Assembly (NCBI RefSeq): GCF_902459465.1
Contig: NC_047067.1
Location: forward strand, 17,422,001-17,486,000
Origin: Asterias rubens
Taxonomy: Eukaryota
Direction: 5' to 3'
Length of the DNA: 64,000 nt
Below the pieces are notes generated by a model. That model did no database searches. It worked only from the letters and a program-made list of their open reading frames with translations, and had not been told where the DNA came from. This document shows, in pieces, positions 5,901 to 21,500 of this stretch. The stretch's first letter is position 1, and each line of letters begins with the position of its first letter. The translations under genes were made by a program, and so were the position numbers.

Positions 5901-8900
5901 CTTCGGATCATTCACTTGTTACTGAACTTTTTGTATCAATAAAGTGTATTAAGATCAGTAAGTTGTCTTGCTCTATACCAAACTTCTTGTCTCAATAAAG
6001 TGGATTAAGATTCAGTAAGTTGTCTTGCTTGTTTGAATTACAGTGTCAATTTGATTGTTCACACAGTAACACAAAATTGCTAATTTTGGCACATTTGATT
6101 TGTGACTTTGTCTCATTCTCATTAACGTGGTCAAGTCCAGCAACATGTAATCATTGCAACTGTGGTATCATTTTAAAGAGGAACAGTTCAGCTTTGCATT
6201 GATATATACCATATACAAAGAGAGTATTAAATAATGACAAATATACTGGATTGAAAAAAGTTTCCTTACTTTTTGTGAGCAGTTTATAACACTAAAGTTT
6301 TTAACACTCGGGTAATTGTCTTCATTTACTGTAGATCAGGAAAAGATGTTTAAGCTTAGTGACAAACTACTGATGCTGTGCGCTGGTGAGACAGGAGACA
6401 CTGTGCAGTTTGCTGAATATATACAGAAGAACATCCAGCTATACAAGATGAGAAATGGTAAGATCATATGTAGACACCTTCCAGTGTCAAGTGACAACAG
6501 TGAAAATAAGTTTGTTAACTATGCATATCTGTTCAGGCATGTCCTCCCAAAACACTGAATTTAAGTACAGAACAATTATTTTACAATGTAGTAAACAGTG
6601 GAGTGGCCAAGTGGTCTACTGGCACTGCAATGAAAATGATTCCAGGTCTTGTCAGAGTGTGGGTTTGGGTTCTGCCGTCGGTTACACCAAACTCTTCCTA
6701 ACTTAGGATGGTGCTTGTCTAACTGGAGGTCTGTATTGTTGTGAATAATTTTGTGCTATGTAACTAGCCGCTGAACTTGACGTCGCGAGTGTTTGAAGTT
6801 GGAGTTCACCCAACACGGCAGTTACTGAGCTTATAGTCATGCATAATAAATAGTGCAGCTCGGCATTGGATGGCTGTGACTTTCCTGATGTGTGTGTAGA
6901 TCCCAGACTGGACTGCAGTATTCAATGTTTGGACGAACTAAACTCTAGTAGGCCTGGATTTTGACTTTGCGGGGGGGGGGGGGGGGGGGGGGGGGGATGA
7001 CTCCAAGCATCCCATTAGCGGTAAGATTCAAGATGAGTTGTCATTATTACCATCTAGTGATTTGTATTGTGACATCATAAATTGTATCTTAAATTCACAG
7101 GGTATGAGCTGTCCCCACATGCAGCAGCAAACTTCACAAGAAAAAATCTGGCAGACTTTCTCAGGAGCAGGGTGAGTCTTTTAAGAGATTACTTATAAAT
7201 CCAGATGAATCTGTCAATTAGGCGAAGAAACAAATAATGGAAAATTTGTTTTGTATAAGTCCACAACAAGAAGCTAAGTGAACAATAGGTTGTATAGTAG
7301 AAAAACATGCAGTCAATCAGGAAATGTTTGAAATTAGCAGTTTTTGTTTATCAGTTTAGTTACAAGAAATAGAAATGTTTTTGTTTGATTTTGTTTTGTT
7401 TTGACCTTATATAATACTAGAGCTGTGATTCGGTAACTTTCTGATTTCTATCTCAATAAACTGTATTATTTTAACTGCACAACTATTCAACATTACTGAG
7501 GGGGTACTTGTCAGAGTTACAGGGCAGTACCAAAAACTATTTCCAAATACCATTGTCTAAACCTTATCTCTTCTAACTATTGTTTTCAGACACCATATTC
7601 CGTCAATATGTTAATAGCAGGCCACGATGACCAGGACGGCCCGTCATTATATTTTATGGACTACCTGGCATCCCTCAACAAGGTCCCTTATGGAGCACAT
7701 GGCTACGGTGCAATGTTCTCACTCAGTATCATGGACAGACATTATAGGAGAGGTGAGGAACCAGACTACATTGGCTTGGACTATCATCATCTTTTACAGT
7801 ACAGAAACGAATTTGAGAAAAAAAATATCTCAGTGCAAAGATTTATAATTGTGTCTATTCTATCTGCACGATGAGAAAAATTATTAATAATGATTATAAT
7901 CCAGTATTTGACCATTCGGCACCAGTGTGATTTAAACACTGTTGACTGGTGGAGTGCCAAGGCGGAGCTGTGTAGTGCACTAGACTTAGGTTTTTTTGGT
8001 AAATTTCAGGGTCTGGGTTTGATGCCTGGTCAAGGCACTTGTGTCCTTAAACAAGACTCTTTACTCGCCTGTGATCACGGATGTGATATTAACTATGTCC
8101 TATTCTAGAGCAGAGTTCTTGTAAGCGTTTTTAGTGACAAGATGCCAGAGTAAAATGCCTGTGGATGTGTTTCCTCTGGATTCAGGGACAGCACTGAGCA
8201 CACGGTGCTTCTCACTCATTGGTGTCAGGTCAAATCCAAAATAATAACTTCTTGTTTTTTCCATCCATGTCTCAGACTTGATTCCTTTTTTAATTAATAC
8301 TCCTTTATGACCCTTTTTGTTGTTCACATTGGCAGATATCAACCAAGAGGAAGCGATGGATATTCTGAAGAAATGTTTAGTGGAGGTAAGTTGACAGTTT
8401 TATTGGGAGGGGGGAGGGGACTAAAGATGTGAGTGGGCGTGCTCTTAATATACAGGAATAAGCACAGAGTTTAAAACAATGGTAAACTTGTTGCTGTGCT
8501 CATGAAAAATATTGTCCCTAACCCTAGCAGTGTCAGTGTTCCTGTGCCGATAATACCAGATCAAACTTGTTGACTGTGTGTTGGCGAGGTCGATTGAATA
8601 AGACATTTGTATTGGTTTAAACTTGCCATGTGCGGATGACCTTTGTGAAAATTCAAGTTTTAGAAATCAGTTATGAACTTGGCAGTCATTGTTTCTTGAA
8701 TTGTTCTGTGGGATTTCTGTAAGAAAGGGGGCAATTTACAGATTAAAATGCATGCCATTACCCATATACATAGAGAGCATTACATTTAGCAATTTATGGT
8801 TAAGCAGCAATATGGTTAAAAGTATAGTCATGTATTTATAGGAGAATGTATACAGAAAGATATAATAAAAGTCACTTGGATAGTTTCAGCTAAATTCAGT

Positions 8901-9410
8901 GATATACGTACTTGTTGAGAAAACAGTAAACTGTCACGGTATTTTCACAGGAATTTTTAATACATTTACCAACCGCATCTCTGGCTGCAGCATTCCCGAA
9001 TGAACACCAGCCATCAGAAACCCTGAAAAACGATTGAATAAATCGTTTTTTTTATTCAAATGTTTTGGGGTAAATTTTTTTAGCAATTAGTTATCTTTAC
9101 AAGGTTTCAGTCCAGCAGATATGAAGTACTTCTGTTTTTCAGCAGATATGAAGTCCAGCAGATATGAAGTACTTCTGTTTTTCATTAATAACAAAACGGA
9201 ACGACAATAAAAAGCATAAATGTTGTGAATTAAATAGGTTTAAGTATTTAATTTAAAAGTGACGTTGAATCTGTACTGATCTACTTTTTATGTTTCACTT
9301 CTGTAAAGGTACAAAAGCGATTTTTGATCAACCTGCCTGCATTCCAAGTCAAAGTTGTAGATAAGGATGGTATTCACTCCCTACCAGTCATCGACGCAAA
9401 AACTCTCTGA
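2837..9410 (+). CDS. PSMB2: Proteasome subunit beta type-2 (spliced gene, 6 coding exons, 199 aa)
   Basis: join(2837..2927,6335..6457,7101..7171,7590..7752,8336..8385,9309..9410) = 600 nt, all GT-AG. Protein [18 protein letters not shown]...[21 protein letters not shown]...[12 protein letters not shown]...AHGYG...KRFLINLP is recognisably PSMB2. Confidence 0.97.
4041..4607. mobile_element. Non-autonomous Kolobok-like DNA element with THAP-like N-terminal remnant
   Basis: TIR AAAGTCACCTGGAA.. / TTCCAGGTGACTTTAA; internal + strand peptide [14 protein letters not shown] resembles the start of a THAP zinc finger. Confidence 0.5.
4867..5340 (-). pseudogene. Tc1-family (DD34E) transposase C-terminal remnant, inverted
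   Basis: Minus-strand translation [42 protein letters not shown] has 34 residues between D and E and the WPxxSPDLNPxEHLW Tc1 motif; frameshifted upstream. Confidence 0.9.
5458..5665 (+). repeat. Extra copy of Tc1 right terminal repeat
   Basis: 208 bp direct repeat of 6081-6288 ending ...TTTTTGTGAGCAGTTTATA. Confidence 0.8.
5668..6288 (+). mobile_element. Tc1 element 3' end (transposase tail, 3' UTR, right TIR, TA)
   Basis: ORF 5680-5925 [19 protein letters not shown]...[12 protein letters not shown]; AATAAA signals; TIR ends GAGCAGTTTA-TA. Confidence 0.9.
6335..6457 (+). CDS. PSMB2: PSMB2 exon 2
   Basis: TAG acceptor; (D)[40 protein letters not shown]; donor G|GTAAG. Confidence 0.97.
7101..7171 (+). 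CDS. PSMB2: PSMB2 exon 3
   Basis: CAG acceptor; (G)[23 protein letters not shown]; donor G|GTGAG. Confidence 0.97.
7590..7752 (+). CDS. PSMB2: PSMB2 exon 4
   Basis: CAG acceptor; [54 protein letters not shown]; donor G|GTGAG. Confidence 0.97.
7930..8090 (+). mobile_element. Degenerate tRNA-derived SINE fragment
   Basis: Decayed A/B-box-like head followed by GGCACTTGTGTCCTTAAACAAGACTCTTTAC, similar to the SINE core at about 39055. Confidence 0.4.
8336..8385 (+). CDS. PSMB2: PSMB2 exon 5
   Basis: CAG acceptor; (D)[16 protein letters not shown]; donor G|GTAAG. Confidence 0.95.
9309..9410 (+). CDS. PSMB2: PSMB2 exon 6 (last coding)
   Basis: AAG acceptor; [36 protein letters not shown]. Confidence 0.95.
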
Positions 9411-10457
9411 AGTCTGATGGATTAGCTTATTCAAAATAAAAATGCAGACCATTATTTGTGACCAGCTATCTTGATTGTACCTAAAACAATCCATGGCATG
9501 CAGAGTAGCGATCTTCCCTAGAATTGGGGGGGGGGGGAGGTGCCTTTCCAAGTGTTTTTTATAAACAGCTAGGGTTTTGAATTGCAATCTAGGAGCCATG
9601 GTAATTGTAAGATGAAACCTGTTGTATTTGAGATTTAAAATGTACTGTAAACAAAGAAATGTTGTCTCCAATTCACTTGTGATCTTGTCAGGGTGAATGA
9701 AGTTAACTATTGACTTTGAATTTTATGCATTTGGATGAACCACCCGTCTTCAGCGCATGTAATGTTACCTGATGTTAACTAATGTTAGGAAGGACACCAT
9801 TTTGATTTGGGCGGGAACGTACATACTTGTACCTTTATTGTAGTCCATAAGTTAAAAAAAAACAATCGTAAATCATAGGTGTTGTTTTTCCTCGCAAAGC
9901 TGGCATTTCTGGCAATACTACAATGTATATTGCTTTGTTTTGACTTAGGCAGGGGATATTAAAAATGTATAAATAATTTACTTTTGGAATTTTGCAGTAG
10001 AACCCTTGCAAAGTACATTAATACAAATTGTATCAGTTGCTTCTAAAAAATCACCATTTTCTAGTGTTCACAAAAATATGTTCAAGTCTAAAAACTGAAG
10101 TCCTTTTTCTTTAGAGTTGCTGACAAAGCTGAACACTTCAGTGTGTATGACAGTTTTTTTTATGAGTTTCCAGAACTTATTTCTATTTCCGAGCAAGTTC
10201 TAAGCCTCAATTTTGAAAAGGTTTCCAGTGAAATTAACATAAGAATTAAATTCAAGAAAGTGTGACTAAAATGTTCTCAAACTTTCAAGCATCCAACTAA
10301 AGCGTCTGTAAGAGATGTTTTGTACTTCTATGAAATGGTTCAAATAAAACAGGAGTGTTTTCTTTTCTCAATCGTTATCGTGTGGTTCTACTTCTGTCAG
10401 ATTTGTGTGCATTTCCTTTGTAGTTTTTCTTCTGTTTCGTTGTCTTTTGCTTTGTTT

Positions 10458-10810
10458 TTAAAGGCACTGGACACTGTTAATTACTCAAAACAATTGTAAG
10501 CATAAAAACTTACTTGGTAACAAGCAATGGAGAGCTGTTGATAGTATAAAACATTGCCCCCCCCCTGAAATAGCGTACAATATAGTTTTTGAGGAAGCTA
10601 AAATAATATTTGAATTGATTTTGAGACCTCAGACGAGGTCTCGAATTCAAGCATCCGAAAGCACACAACCTGTGCGACAAGGGTGTGTTTTCTTCCTTTG
10701 TTCTCTTGCAACCTCGACGACCAATTGAGTCGAAATTTTTCACAGATATGTTATTTTTTGCACGAAATGCACCAAGTGAGAAGACTGGTCTTTGACAATT
10801 ACCAAAGGGA
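10458..10810. mobile_element. TTAA MITE family 1 copy (right end degenerate)
   Basis: Starts TTAAAGGCACTGGACACTG; internal family sequence. Confidence 0.75.
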
Positions 10811-11179
10811 TACATTGTGGTATTACTTATAAATCAAAGAAAGCATTAAACAGGAGGCCGGTATGGTCAACAATAATGGATTAATGGAAGTTTATTTTGC
10901 TTGACAAACTCCTGCGCATATACATAAGATTCTTAAAGATCATTTGGAATGGTATGTGTTGAGTGCGGACAAAATCTCATCTAATCATTTGCACCCCTTC
11001 AATTGGTGTATTTTTGTCTTTTTGGAATTTCAGACAAATCTATGCTTGTCTCTTATGCCTCATCATTATGAAGATCTTTTCTGACAACATTTTACTTTAC
11101 TTCAGCTAGCCTGAGCCAGTCTGCTTCTAGCATTGATCTCCATACTGAAGATCAATAGATGGGTTTTTTTAGCTGTCAA

Positions 11180-11385
11180 AAATGCAAGGCTAGTCGGCGT
11201 CAAAAAAAGCCACAGTGATCAAGTGAAGCACGCCCTCTAGTGGTCTACAATAGTTTGGCTTGTAAAGGCAAAACAGCTAGCTGATCGATCATCACATCAC
11301 ATTACACAACATATCGTTCACGATCACACGTTCGACACGAAGATTGAATCTTGAACAAATAAATCACTAGTAAAGAGAGGTGAAG
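11180..11385 (+). promoter_or_regulatory. SMPD2 promoter / 5' UTR with CTCF-like motif
   Basis: CpG-enriched segment upstream of ATG 11386; 11229-11244 is the reverse complement of ACCACTAGAGGGCGTG (CTCF consensus-like). Confidence 0.45.
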
Positions 11386-11423
11386 ATGGTGATACAACTT
11401 CGTGTTTTAACTTTAAATTGCTG
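11386..11423 (+). CDS. SMPD2: SMPD2 exon 1
   Basis: [12 protein letters not shown](W); donor TG|GTAAG. Confidence 0.92.
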
Positions 11424-14400
11424 GTAAGTTTATTCCAAATTTATATGCTGTTTACTCACGGTCTGTATTTTCGTTAGGCTTTATCATGCTGAGAATAAAG
11501 TTTCCTGTCGAAGGTTATGCTCAAACATTTAGTAGAGTAGACCATGGACTCTGGAGGTGTAGACCCAGTTACTGGGGCGCTGTACTCCTTTTTTTCGAAA
11601 TTTTGACATGTTTATATAATGTCAAAATTTCGAAAAAAAGGAGTACAGCGCCCCAGTTACTGGGTCAGCGGAGGAGAGTCCAAACTGGGCAAATGCAAGG
11701 CCTGCAAACTTCTAGAAACTATTTTAAGGCTCCGGGGGAGCCTTATTTATAGTTTCTAGAAGTACGCAGTCGCAGGGCCCCCAACCAAGGGAACCTTAAA
11801 ATGTGCACCACTCCAGAGATGCCAAGTTCAGGGGCCAGCTATGCGTGAGATTTTACAACCCCCCCCCCTTTGTGAAGTAGTGCACTTCCCATTTTTTCCC
11901 CCCGTTGCTCATTATTTGTTTGTCCCATCCATTCCCATAATGGTTCTTTACCAGTCCCGTTTATATCCCATTCACCATTTATTTTTCGTACAAGCAAATG
12001 CAATCATACAGAAAACAAAAACTTAAAAAAAAGTACTACCACATGGAGTTGAGGCGGCAGGTAAAAAGCAGAGCTTGTCGAGTACGGACCCCCTATCTAA
12101 CAAAGAAAGCAATGTAAGCAATTCTATCGGGTGGTTAAATCTTAAGAAAATGTTGCGGCAAAAATTAGTTTAGGGCGACTTGCACACTTCTTGATATAAA
12201 AAAGCTCAAGTAAGCGGGGTTGCTCAGAAACGATTTCAACAACCTCCACTATGGGAGTTTTGTGCACAGAGCTGTCGGAGAGAAAAACAAAATGTACAAT
12301 GGGTAATTTCGATCCCAGTATCATCAATCTTCAAAATGTTACCACCACAGGATTGCCATGTTCAAGGGCTTTCCTCTCGTACAAAACTTAATGCTCTGAC
12401 TATTTCTAAGGCGGGGCTAGATTCGACGGAGTGAGCAGGCACCCATTAGAAATTGACGTACACTGTGCGTGTATACTATGTAAATTACAAGAAGAACAAA
12501 CGTAAAATGATTTTTTCCCTAATACAGTGAGAAATGAATTTAAATGAAATAGATTTAAACAAAATACCTAACAGTACATGTAATAGAATAAAAGGTGTGT
12601 TATAAGAATAGTACTAGGGAAACATGGGCCCCACAGTGCTGAAAAAACCTTGTCATCCATTAGAGGCGTTTTGTCGTCACTCAGGTTGGGGAGCAAGGAA
12701 ACTTGTAAAAACACACGGAAATCCCAGAGCTGCCAGGACACATCATGTTATGCATCAACAAATCTTTATATTATATTATATGGATATTCTTTTGAATATT
12801 TTATTTGTGCATCTAGATTCATGGTTGGTTGAATATAAGTGGGTGGTTGTTGCAAACTTTGATCCTTTTGATCATCATCAGGGCATGTAACTTCAAGGGC
12901 TGATGGTTGCACGTTTGGTATTGTCACTATTAAATTGGGTTCCATTGTGTGCTGTCTGTTACCTTTCATACTCCCCACTACGGACCGACAAAATTATCTT
13001 TGGATAACGACATCCTAACTGCAAATAATTCGACAAACCGAGATAATTATGTAGGGCCTTCTTAATTACACTTGGCACCATTTTTTATTTTCTTAGATAC
13101 AAAATTCATAGTCAGTTGACCATGGCATTTCAATCCATGAAGAAATTTTGCTTGCACTCATAAGTGGGCTTTGTGTCAAACAGCAGTGCGCAGTGACAGG
13201 GTGGATGAAGATTCTACGCCCTGCAGCATATCATTCCAAGCTGCTGGACACAATCTTCCAGAGAAACACTTTCCCTTAGTATTTTCTATCCTCACTTCTG
13301 TAGACAATTTTTACCCCACTAAAATTGCTCTAGCAAACAAAATTTGTTGACTAATGTTTCAATAAGTAGGATTTGAAACTTTTCATGGTGGAAATACGAT
13401 ATAGAAAGGTTTGCGGTAACACCATGTAATGACTATCTCTAATGAGTTGGGGTGGTTCTGAAAAGAACCATTGGTTTCAACTCGATGTTTCGATCAGTGT
13501 ACTCTGATCGTCTTCTGGAGACTGCTTTCTCCAGAAGACGATCACAGCATACTGATCGAAACGCCGATTGAAACCAACGGTTCTTTTTAGAACCACCCCA
13601 ACTCATTAGAGATAATCATTACATGGTGTTAACGCAAACCTTTCTACATCGTTTCAAAGATACTTTCAAAGTTTGAAGGCCTACTTACAAAATGTTTTGT
13701 TTTTTTACACGGTAGAAAATGCCTTGGTGCCCTACGCCTTCAAGAATGAAGCATCAGGCATGCATTGACTAACACTTGACTAAAATCAGTGGGGAATTAG
13801 AAGTAGGCGTACGAGCCAAGACATTGGATTCTTTTTATTAAAATCTGACGAAATGATTTCCTATTGATTTATACACACAGGGGACTCAAGTACGTCAGTA
13901 AACATCGAGAGGAGCGGATAAGATGCATCGGAGAAGAGCTCGCTAGAGGGCGCTATGATGTTGTTACTCTACAAGAGGTACATTCAGTTTGCCAAAGGGG
14001 GGAGGGGGGGGGGACACGGTGGTGTCAGTATTTGAATGTAATTATAATTATAATACTGTATGTAAAAATATTTCACAATGTATGAACGTTGAGGGTCCAT
14101 CGAGTTAGTCCTAATAACTTATGGAAACAACTAAATGGCCATTGCCTAGGTGCCCCTAAAATGGCTCAAAAAGAAATTTAAATCATTCTCATAGAGGTGC
14201 CCTTGGTATTAACATGCCCTGACGAGAATGGAATATCAGGCTTGAATCTCTGTAGACGTGTACACTATATTTTCCGGTTTCCACAAGAACACAAGTTTGG
14301 GTTTGGAACAAACATTATAACCAGCTGACTACATGTGTGTAAAAAAAAGAATGTTAGGTGATAATAAACTTAATGAAGTCAATTAGTACAATTTGTAAAA

Positions 14401-15488
14401 TTTTAGTGTTTCTTTTTTATGCCATACAATTTCATTAGGTCTGGGTTGAGAAAGATTATGAATCAATCTGTGACAAGGTGAAGAATGTCCTGCCACATCA
14501 TCATTATTTCCACAGGTAAATTATATATTTGTTTTTTCATAGAGGCATCTTATTCGTAAGTCAGCTATTATGATGTTTGTGAGCGCCATCTTGGCTTGTA
14601 GACCCTGTTGATCTTAACAGTTTCAAATAGACCCCTTGGGTCACCATGGTTGAGGTCAAACAATGCACAACTCTTGGCCAATGATGATAGGTCTTCCTTT
14701 GACCTCAGTTAAGCCGGCCTCAGGTCGACCTTGCGTCAACAAAAAATAGTCGGCAACTGACTTTTCAGGATCACATTGCGCCTGAGCTAAGACTATGGGG
14801 AACTTTTCCGTCGGCGATTATTTACGACCTGATCGTAACTGCGATGATTTTAAGACAATCTGAAACAATTGCCGCTCGAAAAAAATTAACAGTCTCAAGA
14901 GTTGAACAGTTTCAACTTGTACGACATGATCCCGACATTCAGGAACCAATCGCAGGTGCACGATTTCTCAGTTTCATGCTCCTTCGCTTCGCTCATCCGC
15001 ATGAAAAACAGTTTCATTCTAAGAACAGCCTCAATGATTACACTATACGACAAAATGATTCAATTTCTGAATTATTTTAATGACAACTTTGGATAAGGGC
15101 CAGGATTCAGATGCCCTTTGAGATAAGGGCCAGGATTCAGATGCCGATTACCCTGGAGTAATTCATAACAATAATATTATTTCTTTAAAAACATTCAGAT
15201 TAAATTATAAGCAAAATACTGTTTTGACAACTCATTAAATATGAAACTAATAATCCATAATTTTTCATGATACATTTCAATTGAAAATCTATTTGAAAAG
15301 AAATTACATAATTCAATATCACCAATAATTCCACCGAGGAATTTTAGCCCTTACGGCTCTTCGGATTATCTGTCCGGCCAAAAAACTCATTAATAACAAA
15401 GAATTCACCTCTCTCAAGTTCCAATCATGAAACTTTGGCCCTTGAGGCTCTACTGAACTTTGTCCTCAGTCCATTTCTCTTCACCGAA

Positions 15489-15537
<49 letters not shown>

Positions 15538-18500
15538 ACCAATCAATTCTAACTCCTTTACTTTTCGCACAGAGACCTCGATAAGGCCAAGCGAGTTTCT
15601 ATATCCCGCTTAATGTACCTGTTTTTGGCTTGTTGGGTTTTCCACCTACCATGCTGCATGATTAACTCTTCCGATATACCCTTATTGGCCAAATGAGTAG
15701 CGCCTCCAGAACGCATGCTATGTAAACCAAAAGACTGCGGACGCTCTATGCCAATTTGTTTCATTGCATCTAAAAAGATTTCCCTGCATCTGGTATAACT
15801 AAGAGGTTTGTGCTTTACCGGTTTGTAAGATTTTGTGCTCGAATGAAATGATAAGGCTGTAAATACATACACATCTTCGCCACATTGTATATCACATTGA
15901 TGCATATATCTACGTAACATTGTTACTGGACAGTAAGTATTCTGTGTGCACGACAAAAAAGTAGTGTTGCCATCTCTAAAAATGTCCGTTTTAGAACGGG
16001 GAATAAAAATTCTCAACCCGGCTTGATTTTCTAATTCAGTGATGTGGCATGCTTTTAGTTGTGCCATCTCATCGTGTCTGAACAGAAGAGAAAACATTAA
16101 CGTCACATAACAAGCCGTCCTTAATTGTATGAGACTACTTTCTTGATTAGCGAATTTATCAGCTATAGATCTCACATGATCAATTGTTAAAGGTTCCTTC
16201 TGCTCTGGGGGTTTATGCAGTGATTTTCTTTGGCTGATTACAATCTGTTTCAGTAGTGGAGAGTCTACTGGGTTTGACTCGATATTCAGGAGAGAATGAA
16301 GCCATTTAATTGCAGCGGAAATCGTAATTATTGAACTTTCAGATTGCGACAAATTACTCTTATCGATGATAAAAGCAGCAACAACAGTGTCTTGAACTGG
16401 GAATCGGAGAGGAATTTTATGAGCAACCAACCAAGCGAAAAAATCTCTGCATTTATAAAGATAACTGTTTAGAGTACTCTCTGCTTTGGCTAACAAAATA
16501 TCCTGAAAAATTTGTTCCTTGAATGCGTCTATACTGTTGGGAAAGCTTGACCAAAAATCTTGACTGCGAATGACCTATACAGCAATTAAGAGAAAATTAA
16601 TTAAGAATAAATAATCAACTCATGTAACTTAATCAAATCTCAGTACAATCAATATATATGGCACATACTGGACTAGTAAACGTATCTGAGCCCAAATAAG
16701 AATTCTTGTTATTCCCCAACTCTAAGATGTCTGAACCTTCAAGAGTTATCATTCCCGTAATCCATGTTCTGTAACAAGACCATAACAAAGGCCAAAAGGG
16801 GGAGGAGGGCCACCAGGGGAAAACAAGGGCTCCTCTGCCTTTACATAAGTACAAATGTCTTAGAACACTAGGGATCAAAAGTACAGGGGGCACTAACAAA
16901 CAATTCTCTTTTGACCAATCCTGTGCTAAGGCATCTACGCCGGCTGTATTTGGATTCCAAAATCTGGAAAAGAAGCGGGACACTTTAGCATTATAATAAC
17001 TTGCAAAACAGTCAACTGAGAAAGGACCCCATGTATCATTGATTATGCTGAAGAATTTGTCTGAAATCATCCAATCATCTAAATCGATCAATCTACTGAC
17101 AAAGTCTGCTTTGTCATTCATGGTTCTTGGTATCCATTCTACTTCTAGACGCACATTGTTATTAATACAAATATTGAAAATATCAATTGCCAAACTATGT
17201 AAATCCACCTTCATGCTTCCTACTTCCACTATACGAGCTGCTGACTGACTATCTGTGAAGATTTTGAGTTGTGAATTGGATACTATTGGCAGGAATGATG
17301 AAATTGCAAATAATATTGTATCCAATTCTCGCCAAGTGGAACTTCTTTTTGCCTCAACTTCAGTCCAATTTTTGTGAGCTGTATGGATATCATTACATAA
17401 TATAGCACCAGATCCCACTGCACTTGCATCCCCACATACTATCTTGTTCACTCTGGTGGAAACAAATAGATAACGCACATTTCTTTTTGAAGCATTACTC
17501 TTCCAAAATTCAATTTCTGACAAGCACAAATTATCAAGTTTGATAATATCGTCTTCATGATGAGCCTGTGATATTTTCACTTGGCAGTTCCTAGTGGATA
17601 GTCTAGTTAAATTACCAACAACAGGGCCCAGAGATATGATCTGGCCTACAAAAGAATGTAGCTTGCGAATTGTGACAACGTCTGCAGAAGTCAACTCATT
17701 GATAGTGCGCAGAATTTTATCAACGCGCCTCTGGGAAACTCGCAAAGTGCCCTCTACGGAGTCCCAATGCATGCCAAGCCAAACAATTTGGTTAACAGGA
17801 TTCCAGCAAGATTTGTCCATGTTATAAACTAAACCAGATCTTATCAAATCAACTTTTACATGTTGGGAGATTTTACTTGCAATGTGAAAATCATTTGTGT
17901 TATTATCACATGAAGCAGGTACCACCACAAAACCATCATCTAAGTACAGGGCAATGAGAATGCCACACGATCTCCAGTGGGTCACGAGTGGTTTCATCAT
18001 CTTGGTGAATAATAATGGTGCGGAAGACAACCCAAATGGAAGAACAGTAAACTCAAAATATCTGCGAACATTGTTTATGATCCAAGAAAAACCCAAGTAT
18101 TTCTGATAGTCGGAAGAGATATCAATGTGGTGATACCCTGATTTCAAATCAAATGAAAACAAGTAAGCATTCTTTGAAAGAAATTGAAGACCTACTTTCC
18201 AGTCATCTAATTTAAAATGCATCTTTGGGACATACTCATTTACGTTAATCAAATCCAAAATCAACCTTCTTTTACCAGATGCCTGATATGCAACAGAAAG
18301 GGGATTGACAACAAATGAAGGGTTTAATTTTTCTTCTATTCTACCAGAGCTTAATAACTCTGAAATTGTCTCCGTCACAAAGGAATCTTCCTTAATTGCC
18401 GACTTGTTATTTTTGAAAAACATGGATGGTGGTGATGTAATGAAAGGAATGCGGTAACCCTCATTGATAACAGACAAAACCATGGATGATGCCCCTATAT

Positions 18501-21500
18501 GAAACCAAAATTGTGAGTGAGCTCGTAACCTGCCTTTCACATTGACTTTATCAGAAATTAAATTCTTAATACTGCTATCCTGATAATCACATCGTACCTC
18601 CAACACGTCAGCAAACTTATGTGACAGGCTTGCCACCTTAAGAGACGCTTGAGCCTGACGTTGATGGCGCTGCAATTGACTCTGCGGGCTTGAATGAGCC
18701 TGTGGGCGTGGTTCCCGCAATTGCTGGTAGGAAGTTGTACCCTGTTCGATGAAAGGCGGGAGCTTGCCATGGAACCGACACACCTCTGGAGTGGAAAGTG
18801 TTGTATCCAAGGGGAAGAGCCGTCTGAGCTCGGGATCGGACTCGGTGTGACAGTGGGGGGCCTGTTGCGTAGGGACACTCCCGGGCCCAGTGGCCAGGCA
18901 TTCTGCAGCTGAAACACACATCATTTGGCATGCCTAAAATGTATAATGAGAAAAAATACAAACAGCGAGAAAAACTGGAACTTCATATAAGGAAAACACG
19001 AACAATATGGGTAACCAGCAGTGAACGACCTGAAAGAACTCACTGGTCACTACCGTAGCTTTATATATCCGAATGCTTTAATGCTTCGGTGAGTTTACAT
19101 CAATTCTAGGCGTGGCTCCCTTGAACCATGACCAACACTTTGCATTGAACGGGGGGCACACTCCCATCATTGATGCTATCCCAACGAATGAAACTAAATT
19201 TTCATGCTCCTTCGCTTCGCTCATCCGCATGAAAAACAGTTTCATTCTAAGAACAGCCTCAATGATTACACTATACGACAAAATGATTCAATTTCTGAAT
19301 TATTTTAATGACAACTTTGGATAAGGGCCAGGATTCAGATGCCCTTTGAAACAACCAAAGACAAAAGGGGGAATTTAACGTTTTACCTCGAAAAAGACTA
19401 CGGTCACCAAAATTCTTGAAAACCACCCCATCTTGCTGTCGTCTATCCGAAGTCTTTTGTTTCTTTCTTCCTTCCAATTCTTTGAGAGCAGCGTCCTCAG
19501 CTATCTGCACCTTCTTCTGATCTTCGGAAGACTGGTCTCTCTTGCCGCCCTTCTCTAACTGTTGAATGGTGATCCAACCTGCTCTACTGCTATCAGCGAT
19601 CTTGATCTTTTGCTTTCTATCCGCTAAAAGGTCCTCAGCCTCGTGAATAGCTTCGACGACCTTGTCTGTATCACCCTTCTGCAAAAAGGCGACTTTTATT
19701 TTATCTAGAATAATCTCTAGCTGTCCACAAAACAGCAATTGGGCAGAATTACCGGGCTTGGTCAACTCCTTCGCTTCCAATTTTATTTTGAGTTCCTTCA
19801 CCGCTGTTTCATCTGTGATAGTGGAGTTAGCCAACTTGTCGAATTTCTTGTCGAAATAACTCTGAAACTTTTCAAACAAAAGCTCAGTGCTTAAAGCAGA
19901 ACCGTGCTCCTCTGCATTAGCCATAACACTATCAGAACTTCATATAAGGAAAACACGAACAATATGGGTAACCAGCAGTGAACGACCTGAAAGAACTCAC
20001 TGGTCACTACCGTAGCTTTATATATCCGAATGCTTTAATGCTTCGGTGAGTTTACATCAATTCTAGGCGTGGCTCCCTTGAACCATGACCAACACTTTGC
20101 ATTGAACGGGGGGCACACTCCCATCATTGATGCTATCCCAACGAATGAAACTAAATTTGTTGTGACCTGAGCATATTTTGTCTGTGCATTGTCGACGGTT
20201 AGTTGCGGGCGCAAGAAAATCGTAGGTCTACCTGAGGCCGGCTTAAGAGTACTGTAAGGATTTGTGACATCATACATGTCACAAATGTAAGGGTTTTGTA
20301 TTTTTTGGAACATTCGATTGTTTATTTCACCTCCATGGTAACCTTGTTGTCAGTGGGGTACGATCTTGCTGTACCATTACTTAACAGAATACCTTGCTCA
20401 ATCATAGCTCCTTGGTGGATTTTGAAATTTCAAAATATATTGGCTGATTGGGTATTTTATTAGTGCTGGGGTATGATCCGTAATGCAGTTTAGGGTCAGT
20501 TTAGGATGACGTTATAAATCATATTTGAAGTGATTTTGGCACATGCATTCTAAGCCCCTTACATTCAAGCACCCTACCAAGCATTTGAATGTTTTTAACA
20601 AGCTTGCGCGCAGAGCAGTCACTTTAAACCAATCCGCATTGTTTTTTTCACCACATCTCTTCCAGATTGATCGGGAGAGCTGCCTCCCTGGATCCTGGTT
20701 TAAATCCTACCAGGGGTAGAACTAAACTAAAAGTCTTAGGTTTAGACTCTACATTGGTCCTTGAGTCTTGTGGGTTTTTAGACCGTCTCGCATTACTGAT
20801 ATTTCCTCCCACATCTGCAAAACATTGTAATAATAACTAGACATTAGGTGTGTGTGAACAAACACAAAGCTGTTCCGTGTTCTTTTGCTTTGATTATGTG
20901 TTAACATTACCAAGGAGTCTATAACTGAATGTTTGAAAAATACTGTACAGTGTCTTGAGTTACGGTGCCACTTCATGGGGTCACGGTAACCTAAGGCTAA
21001 TCTCTAACGCCCAAGGAGTCTGTAACTGAAAAAAAGTTAGAAAATCGGTTGTGTAGTTCTTGAGATATGGTGCCACTTCTGGTTGACCCGGAAGTAGAGG
21101 TCAACTTGGGGTCATGGATTTTCAAAGTTTATTTTTTATGCCTTAGGAGGATAAAACTGAACAAACAGGATTGAAAATCGGTTGTATAGTACTTGGCGTA
21201 TGGTCCCACTTCCGGTTCACCCGGACGTAGAGGCCAACATGGGGTCACGAGTTTTCACAGTCAATATTAATGTCAAGGAGTCTGTAAGTGAAAACAAATT
21301 GAAAATCGGTTGAGTAGTTCTTGAGATATGGTCCCACTTCCGGTTGACCCGGAAGTAGAGGTCAAATTGAGGTCACGGTTTTTCCAAATTTTTCTCCTAT
21401 CCCCAAGGAGTCTTATAACTACAAACAGTCGACATTCTTAAAGAAGAATGTCGTCTTCCTGTGATAATTTATCTCGGAATGTCGACATCCTAAAAGTAGG

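Follow-up and report, generated by a model that had tools for sequence, protein, structure and literature searches.

A spliceosomal intron of gag encloses the internal repeat junction of a PAT-like retrotransposon in the sea star Asterias rubens

Since retrotransposons are copied through RNA, introns are expected to disappear from them, and a conserved intron in such an element is therefore informative on the choice of the replication template. This question is raised by a 64,000-nucleotide (nt) stretch of the Asterias rubens genome (contig NC_047067.1, positions 17,422,001 to 17,486,000; hereafter the window, whose own numbering is used for all positions), which carries on its minus strand a complete, ~5.19-kb, DIRS-order retrotransposon of the PAT-like kind with a tyrosine recombinase (YR). 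On the element strand, the 5′ terminal repeat A1 is followed by gag exon 1, an intron (GT..AG) harboring the internal repeats B1 and A2, gag exon 2 with a CCHC zinc knuckle, pol, the YR gene, and the 3′ terminal repeat B2. Why does an element that passes through RNA keep an intron, and why is the internal repeat junction placed in it?

A gag intron that holds the B1/A2 junction

On the minus strand, the donor reads TTTTTCGAG^GTAAAA, with GT at 19386-19385 (^ marks a splice boundary), and the acceptor, which follows a pyrimidine-rich tract, reads ...TTTTTTCTCATTATACATTTTAG^GCATGCC, with AG at 18935-18934 (in a longer form, ...CATTTTAG^GCATGCC). Exon 1 counted from the ATG at 19924 comprises 538 nt, which places the intron in phase 1, and the repeat coordinates put both B1 and A2 wholly within 18934-19386. 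Joining 19387 to 18933 yields an 834-nt coding sequence (CDS) for 277 amino acids (aa) without an internal stop and with the junction peptide ...DRSLFRG^..., while the open reading frame (ORF) of the unspliced sequence, 19271-19924, encodes 217 aa that have no Pfam match. The spliced product (residues 1-276) aligns end to end with the Patiria miniata NCBI protein P0002 (residues 1-267) at 56% identity. The GT..AG ends, the pyrimidine tract, and the removal that keeps the frame identify a genuine spliceosomal (U2-type) intron, which sits in the Gly codon of the conserved LFRG motif and holds the only internal B/A junction of the element. The initial annotation had placed the B1/A2 junction inside a GT..AG phase-1 intron of gag, and the repeats and splice ends read just so; its proposal that intron removal links the helical Gag with a CCHC knuckle in a 277-aa protein is borne out by the uninterrupted CDS and by a zf-CCHC match above the gathering score, and the 217-aa Gag without a knuckle that it had assigned to unspliced RNA is the ORF given above.

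Related Gag proteins are divided at the same codon. A search with exon 1 returned homologues at E values of 1e-105 to 1e-35, including three P. miniata NCBI proteins of 272-282 aa named “CCHC-type domain-containing,” and a profile search added a fourth P. miniata protein as well as the A. rubens model P0028. All five proteins (P0002, P0004, P0007, and P0009 of Patiria and P0028 of A. rubens) share the pattern ...LFRG^(M/L)(P/S).....C..C....H....C, and the NCBI gene models of both sea stars splice at the Gly codon of LFRG. At the level of DNA, seven families or loci ranging from Porites to sea stars have a phase-1 intron in the Gly codon of LFRG, bounded by GT..AG and enclosing B1/A2. These are the window family, a second A. 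rubens family (L022), three Patiria loci (L031, L042, and L043), a Porites locus (L044), and an ENA locus (L045). The latter six follow a common plan, namely, A1, gag, G^GT..B1 A2..AG^GC, and CCHC (Table 1), so that the codon, phase, and ends predicted to be conserved in related families are the same in six further families or loci. One other locus, L046 (P0135), tells nothing, being a degenerate fragment that lacks repeats. Judged by sequence, the arrangement of an intron-enclosed junction is thus conserved across animal phyla, from coral to sea stars.

An exhaustive profile search recovered 901 relatives of the helical Gag, and ~150 of the 163 proteins that were examined came from this search. 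Among the 163 are 27 intron-naive ORF calls that stop 1-74 residues past xFRG, with unconserved tails and no knuckle; one cluster of such calls bears the name Porites. In L042, P0009, L044, and L045, exon 2 lacks a Met, and the knuckle can therefore be expressed only by splicing in these cases.

The intron of L043 in P. miniata has itself been invaded. A BEL/Pao long terminal repeat (LTR) retrotransposon with 847-nt LTRs of 99.9% identity (L043 7565-15557) lies right after the donor, and the NCBI model still splices over the enlarged intron.

Table 1. Coordinates of the A. rubens element (window numbering) and of related loci (numbering of each locus)
Feature	Position	Strand	Details
Whole element	14972..20158	-	Termini of 4 other copies; reverse transcriptase (RT), RNase H, and YR domains, weak Dam-like methyltransferase (MT) match
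A1, 5′ terminal repeat	19935..20158	-	224 nt, 100% identical to A2; TATA motif TATATAAAG at 20016-20024
A2, internal copy of 5′ repeat	18978..19201	-	Equals A1; TATAAA at 19060-19065
B1, internal copy of 3′ repeat	19200..19354	-	155 nt, 99% identical to B2; ATTAAA at 19304-19309
B2, 3′ terminal repeat	14972..15126	-	Pairs with B1 at 99%
gag exon 1, coding part	19387..19924	-	179 codons + 1 nt; helical Gag, end ...DRSLFR-G
Spliceosomal intron	18934..19386	-	453 nt, GT..AG, phase 1
gag exon 2, coding part	18638..18933	-	98 codons including the split Gly, plus stop codon 18638-18640
CCHC zinc knuckle	18872..18919	-	Pfam PF00098, E 1.1e-5, 25.7 bits versus cutoff 20.8
pol ORF (RT, RNase H, Dam-like MT)	16633..18924	-	763 aa; +1 frame versus gag exon 2, ~290-nt overlap
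YR ORF	15558..16496	-	PF00589 (Phage_integrase), E 3.5e-11
Conserved hairpin across B1/A2	19186..19247	-	Outer stem GAATGAAACTG with TAGTTTCATTC, inner stem TTTTCATGC with GCATGAAAA
L031 (Patiria), repeats	A1 7763-7996; B1 8567-8702; A2 8697-8930; B2 10920-11057
L031 (Patiria), intron	8539-8965		Donor CTTTTTCGAG^GTAACA; acceptor CCAG^GCATGCC
L042 (Patiria)	Intron 7524-8000		Full 5.3-kb element, same order
L043 (Patiria)			Same order; BEL/Pao LTR element within intron, now 8.5 kb
L022 (P0028), second A. rubens family			Donor CTTTTGCGAG^GTAAAA; junction motif within annotated intron
L044 (Porites), repeats	A1 6813-6991; B1 7630-7732; A2 7727-7904; B2 11374-11477		RT and YR present
L044 (Porites), splice ends			gag end ...LLFRG; donor CGAG^GTTTGT; acceptor CAAG^GCCGTCG, then RRQPNPQDICFTCGWPGHW
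L045 (ENA locus)			Same arrangement; CGTG^GTAAGC ... ATAG^GCCGTCG
L047 (Amphiura), repeats	A1 6755-6928; B1 11605-11732; A2 11731-11904; B2 12000-12127

Spliced and unspliced forms and the genomic copies

Four public runs (X1, X2, X3, and X10) were compared as assembled contigs; X10 has the organism code of most of the runs that contain this stretch. One X10 contig, at a depth of 30.8, joins 18932 to 19386 and skips 453 nt (CT..AC on the plus strand, cut +1), which on the minus strand corresponds exactly to the GT..AG of 18934-19386. The joint 19387^18933, for which the initial annotation had asked to look, is therefore present in a contig whose library type is not on record and whose depth pattern is RNA-like. 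Beside it, X10 contains unspliced contigs over the donor (19314-19415; depth, 34.9) and over the acceptor (depth, 43). The exon 1 contig (19386-19964) has a depth of 69.9, approximately the sum of the spliced and unspliced donor contigs, and the contig of repeat A, at a depth of 50, is below exon 1 and continues into B1 with no branching to flanking DNA. Since DNA would double the depth on A and branch at the flank of each copy, we read X10 as RNA, and the depths suggest that spliced and unspliced forms are present at roughly equal levels. Unspliced contigs over the donor are found in X1 as well as in the metatranscriptome X3, and no splice joint was found in the contigs of X1, X2, and X3. X2 seems to contain DNA, its contigs branching out of A1 into the flanks. 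Narrowing the public runs to those with the library word “RNA-Seq” gave metatranscriptomes only, and their shares were small.

Could the joint have arisen without any splicing in vivo, as an intronless DNA retrocopy of another individual or as an assembly artefact, with gene models that are ab initio predictions? The unrecorded library type of X10, the single contig with the joint (its shorter side is 27 nt), and the three other runs without it would agree with such an origin, but such a junction is missing from the reference assembly, the X10 depths are unlike those of DNA (repeat A shows no doubling, and contigs do not branch into flanks), and without splicing it would be difficult to account for GT..AG ends, a phase, and a Met-less CCHC exon that are conserved across phyla. 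We give this explanation almost no credence.

The genomic copies agree in keeping the intron. The exact donor and acceptor are present in all five full copies, which are ~99% identical (the window copy, C2, C13, C10, and C1), and in C12, a copy with an internal deletion (17232/18829); a 32-nt pattern representing the spliced junction, sought with a tolerance of 2 mismatches, had 0 matches in the 417.6-Mb assembly (150 contigs). Retention of the intron in genomic copies, another expectation of the initial annotation, thus holds for 5 of 5 full copies in an assembly without an intronless junction. Three outcomes had been named beforehand as grounds against the proposal (no spliced form, unconserved sites, and intronless copies), and none of them was encountered. 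A loose end at 18829 in X2 was considered as an alternative splice and rejected; the deletion breakpoint of C12 falls on the same base and is its likely source.

Other copies of the family are partial. C4, C48, and, with further deletions, C14 (loci L038, L039, and L037, respectively) are made of A, exon 2, pol, YR, and B and are without gag exon 1 and B1, while C17 (L040) is made of A, gag exon 1, and B; there is also one small A+B remnant (the full copy C1 is locus L041). The copies of the two kinds have flanks of their own. Both kinds are the products expected if a recombinase resolves a circle with two B/A sites, and the same partial copies are also expected from homologous A1/A2 and B1/B2 recombination, the two routes not being distinguishable.

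Expression of the downstream genes bears on the same intron. With respect to gag exon 2, Pol lies in the +1 frame in 4 of 4 sea-star families, and the two overlap by 92-386 nt. A transcript started at A2 would carry a 21-codon upstream ORF (uORF) on the minus strand (18921-18986; ATG at 18986) whose UGA overlaps the pol-frame ATG at 18924 (AUGA), and the ACQM start is common to the window and Patiria L042. As a conserved route to Pol, this stop-start was rejected: L031 has a closed pol frame at this point and the overlap differs in extent, and AUGA is therefore not a feature of the family. A 471-aa NCBI model that includes a Phage_integrase domain spans 3.4 kb of L042 in P. miniata (8010-11438); it begins at the pol-frame ATG just past the gag acceptor and may reflect a further splice from the pol start to the recombinase ORF.

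It might be supposed that the knuckle and pol come from a second transcript begun at an A2 promoter inside the intron and that the GT..AG fusion is incidental. A2 is indeed an exact copy of A1, TATATAAAG included, exon 2 of the window starts with G^GC ATG, the A2-derived uORF ends at the pol-frame ATG, and the Patiria model begins at the homologous ATG (L042, 8010). Against this stand the Met-less exon 2 of four relatives (L042, P0009, L044, and L045), the pol frame that is closed at the acceptor in L031, and the exact spliced joint in X10; an A2 transcript may exist additionally, yet it cannot replace splicing as the source of the knuckle. We consider an A2 origin of the knuckle quite improbable.

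The B/A hairpin and the proposed roles of the two RNAs

About 55 nt around the B/A junction are nearly invariant among Asterias and Patiria families that are otherwise unalignable, and they are recognizable in Porites. This sequence folds as a two-part hairpin straddling the junction (minimum free energy, -25.8 kcal/mol; z, -3.3). Over 12 sequences, 89% of the cells are paired, compared with 41-52% when the partners are slid; both sides are altered in 9 of 20 hairpin pairs, and none of 500 shuffles attains such values. No Rfam match for the junction hairpin was found by cmscan of 14900-20250 at an E value of ≤1, and a hammerhead-like motif, which the hairpin loop GGATGAGCGAAGCGAAGGAGC had suggested, was dropped on the same empty result. 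The complete hairpin is possible only at B1/A2 or at a B2/A1 joint. If the transcript runs from after the TATA motif of A1 to after the ATTAAA of B2, as these motifs suggest, then the only RNA copy of the hairpin would be intronic. The hairpin is a candidate for a recombinase site or a replication structure.

The point of integration could be deduced from the host sequence. Contigs of uninterrupted host-repeat copies give the empty site as GGTCACAACAA/CTGAG, and the occupied site reads CAAC-AAATTTAG...GCATGAAA-CTGAG, so that the crossover fell within the run of A residues at B/A and produced no target-site duplication. The host is another repeat with 23-nt terminal inverted repeats (14709-14731 and 20224-20246; 96% complementary), and the insertion, with flanks 14930-14971 and 20159-20200, is precise. 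A tandem array at 20911-21410, with a period of ~105-133 nt and 3-4 copies of 70-90% identity, adjoins the host repeat.

A relative with an unsplit gag is found in the brittle star Amphiura filiformis. XP_072045836 (P0144) is a homologous Gag with its knuckle in a single ORF (L047 7001-7747), and the internal junction of L047 lies downstream of the ORFs, the order being A1...B1 A2 B2 at the 3′ end. Another 59 Gag homologues among the 163 proteins contain FRG and CCHC within one sequence. The intron thus accompanies the placement of B1A2 inside gag. L047, which has the Ngaro layout together with a weak Dam-like MT match, shares with the window element a homologous helical Gag (FRG...CCHC), RT, RNase H, and a B/A junction that forms a hairpin, of like shape and different sequence; it differs in having the junction 3′ of the ORFs and an uninterrupted gag, which makes it a natural control for the intron.

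According to PMC6681497 and PMC7192593, the Goodwin-Poulter model for split direct repeats has the transcript start inside A1 and end inside B2. The untranscribed parts would then be regenerated from the internal B1A2, and the B2/A1 junction for the recombinase would be made in this way. Spliced RNA would lack both this template and the hairpin and could serve as a message only, and new copies would come solely from intron-retaining RNA. If spliced RNA is a replication dead end in this way, the intron would stay in the lineage. More speculatively, the donor, which is ~80 nt upstream of the poly(A) signal of B1, may suppress premature polyadenylation via the U1 small nuclear ribonucleoprotein. 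A “switch” in which spliced RNA is the message and intron-retaining RNA the genome would fit the data: both forms occur among the X10 contigs, with their RNA-like depths and unrecorded library type, the genomic progeny always contain the intron, and the intronic B1A2 hairpin, which may be required in cis for replication, shows conservation and compensatory changes. Taken as a whole, the best explanation, to which we give good though not full confidence, is that the intron holds the template junction, that spliced RNA is the Gag message, and that unspliced RNA is the replicable genome.

Several points weigh against this explanation. The joint occurs in one contig only, from one of four runs and with a library type that is not on record, and should X10 be DNA, that animal would have a DNA copy lacking the intron. 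The gene models, made by Gnomon, are possibly partly ab initio. An X1 contig extends to 20023, which is within the TATA motif, and the transcription start and poly(A) sites are predictions from motifs only. The template role of B1A2 belongs to a model that is extended to PAT-like elements by analogy, and linear single-stranded cDNA intermediates have been reported for DIRS-1, so that the circle model may be incomplete (PMC7192593). The model assigns no source RNA to Pol, which is in the +1 frame in all four sea-star families. Finally, the regulated ratio of spliced to unspliced RNA that the word “switch” implies is hypothetical.

The ratio is also where a more passive history would differ. B1A2 may have landed in gag, flanking splice sites may have rescued Gag, and splicing may be inefficient and its ratio unregulated, the intron persisting since only full-length RNA is copied. 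Such a history would suit the similar depths of spliced and unspliced contigs in one run, the unsplit gag of the relative with a 3′ B1A2, and the unconserved tails of 1-74 aa past LFRG, which give no sign of selection on a truncated Gag; yet coral and sea star share the position, the phase, and even the flanking nucleotides of the intron (CTTTTTCGAG^GT ... AG^GC), a conservation which argues for a function beyond tolerance. Passive accommodation largely overlaps with the explanation preferred here, differing only on regulation of the ratio, and we think it rather unlikely.

Returning to the preferred explanation, in which the intron holds the template junction, it is tempting to extend it further. 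The gag intron could be an ancient self-exclusion module, older than the cnidarian-bilaterian split and carrying the sole RNA copy of the B/A hairpin as a recombinase site or replication origin; splicing would commit an RNA irreversibly to being a Gag message, the donor would shield genomic RNA from the poly(A) signal of B1, and RNA sorting like that of retroviruses would have evolved independently. This extension is offered tentatively, as a possibility that we ourselves doubt somewhat more than we believe it.

Classification and comparison with known systems

Four other full copies, ~99% identical, terminate at the same bases and thereby define the ends of the element, and split direct repeats, A1...B1A2...B2 with A1=A2 and B1=B2, are present in every full copy. 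According to the ORF list and Pfam, the CCHC knuckle is carried by a 107-aa ORF (18638-18961). The pol ORF matches RVT_1 (E 1e-17; 65 bits versus a cutoff of 29.6) and, weakly, RT_RNaseH_2 (E 0.003). The Dam match (PF05869) is weak as well (E 2.1e-5; 24.7 bits, under the cutoff of 28.1), and it is equally weak in Amphiura L047; an MT-like domain after RNase H is the character that separates DIRS and PAT from Ngaro. No integrase or protease families were among the Pfam matches of the element ORFs. All four sea-star families have a poly(A)-signal motif at positions 31-46 of B.

Internal repeats near the 5′ end constitute the “echinoderm-form Pat1-like” layout known from SpPat1 of Strongylocentrotus purpuratus (Goodwin and Poulter 2001/2004, via Szitenberg et al. 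2014, PMC4157794). The latter source also lists the echinoderm form in Nematostella, Lottia, and a dorylaimid nematode, places the repeats of the nematode form between MT and YR, and ascribes a Gag zinc finger to both forms. In the window element, the internal repeats sit between gag's helical part and the knuckle (18978-19354), unlike those of the nematode form as so defined (MT-YR interval), and the zinc finger is found in Gag, the CCHC being joined to it only once the intron is removed. By its sequence features, the element is a young, probably active member of the “echinoderm-form” PAT-like YR retrotransposons, a grouping with SpPat1 made on layout and domains.

The initial annotation could not say whether this layout had already been described. 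It has, as far as 5′-proximal internal repeats are concerned (PMC4157794), and a mention of the intron was not found: the word “intron” is absent from PMC4157794, PMC3266345, PMC6681497, PMC3783388, PMC2685390, and PMC9210276, although the primary descriptions were outside this search and a prior mention is possible. What appears to be new here is the location of the internal repeats within a conserved gag intron, the layout itself being already known. Its meaning is threefold. The intron holds the sequence that the model requires for rebuilding the ends, so that its persistence has a simple explanation that can be tested. Through it, the poorly understood replication of PAT-like and DIRS elements becomes approachable, in particular the identity of the genome RNA, the start and end of the transcript, and the role of the B/A hairpin. 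And since intron-naive ORF callers give a truncated Gag without a zinc finger, classification by “zinc finger in Gag” is affected.

SpPat1-type elements are similar to the window element in RT, RNase H, YR, the split direct repeats A1/B1A2/B2, and the zinc finger in Gag, and have an MT, for which the window element has a weak match; the difference is that no intron around the internal repeats is mentioned for them in the accessible literature. The ICR (internal complementary region) of DIRS-1 is an internal copy of both termini and has been proposed as a template for end regeneration (PMC7192593 and PMC3266345). The likeness lies in this internal copy of sequences of both termini, and the differences are that DIRS-1 has inverted terminal repeats and an ICR 3′ of the ORFs, with no intron involved. 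As for genomic copies that keep a spliceosomal intron, Arkhipova and colleagues (cited in PMC8557442) reportedly described in 2003 that Penelope-like elements retain introns; these elements belong to another order, use a target-primed mechanism, and have introns without a replication junction.

In retroviruses, the major 5′ splice site precedes both the packaging signal and gag, and the unspliced RNA is the genome. Here, too, a cis element for replication would lie in a region that is spliced out, and both RNA forms coexist. In the window element, complete Gag would be made from spliced RNA and not, as in retroviruses, from unspliced RNA, the intronic element is a terminal-repeat junction and putative template and not a demonstrated packaging signal, and an export factor is not known.

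Drosophila copia makes a spliced subgenomic gag RNA. Spliced subgenomic gag RNAs of this Ty1/copia type have been described for BARE (PMC3735527) and Arabidopsis EVD (PMC5580714). In these elements, as proposed here, splicing splits the RNA pool into a Gag message and a replicable full-length RNA. They differ in that their intron removes pol and raises the Gag:Pol ratio, whereas in the window element the 453 nt taken out with the intron are non-coding repeats, and pol stays downstream of exon 2.

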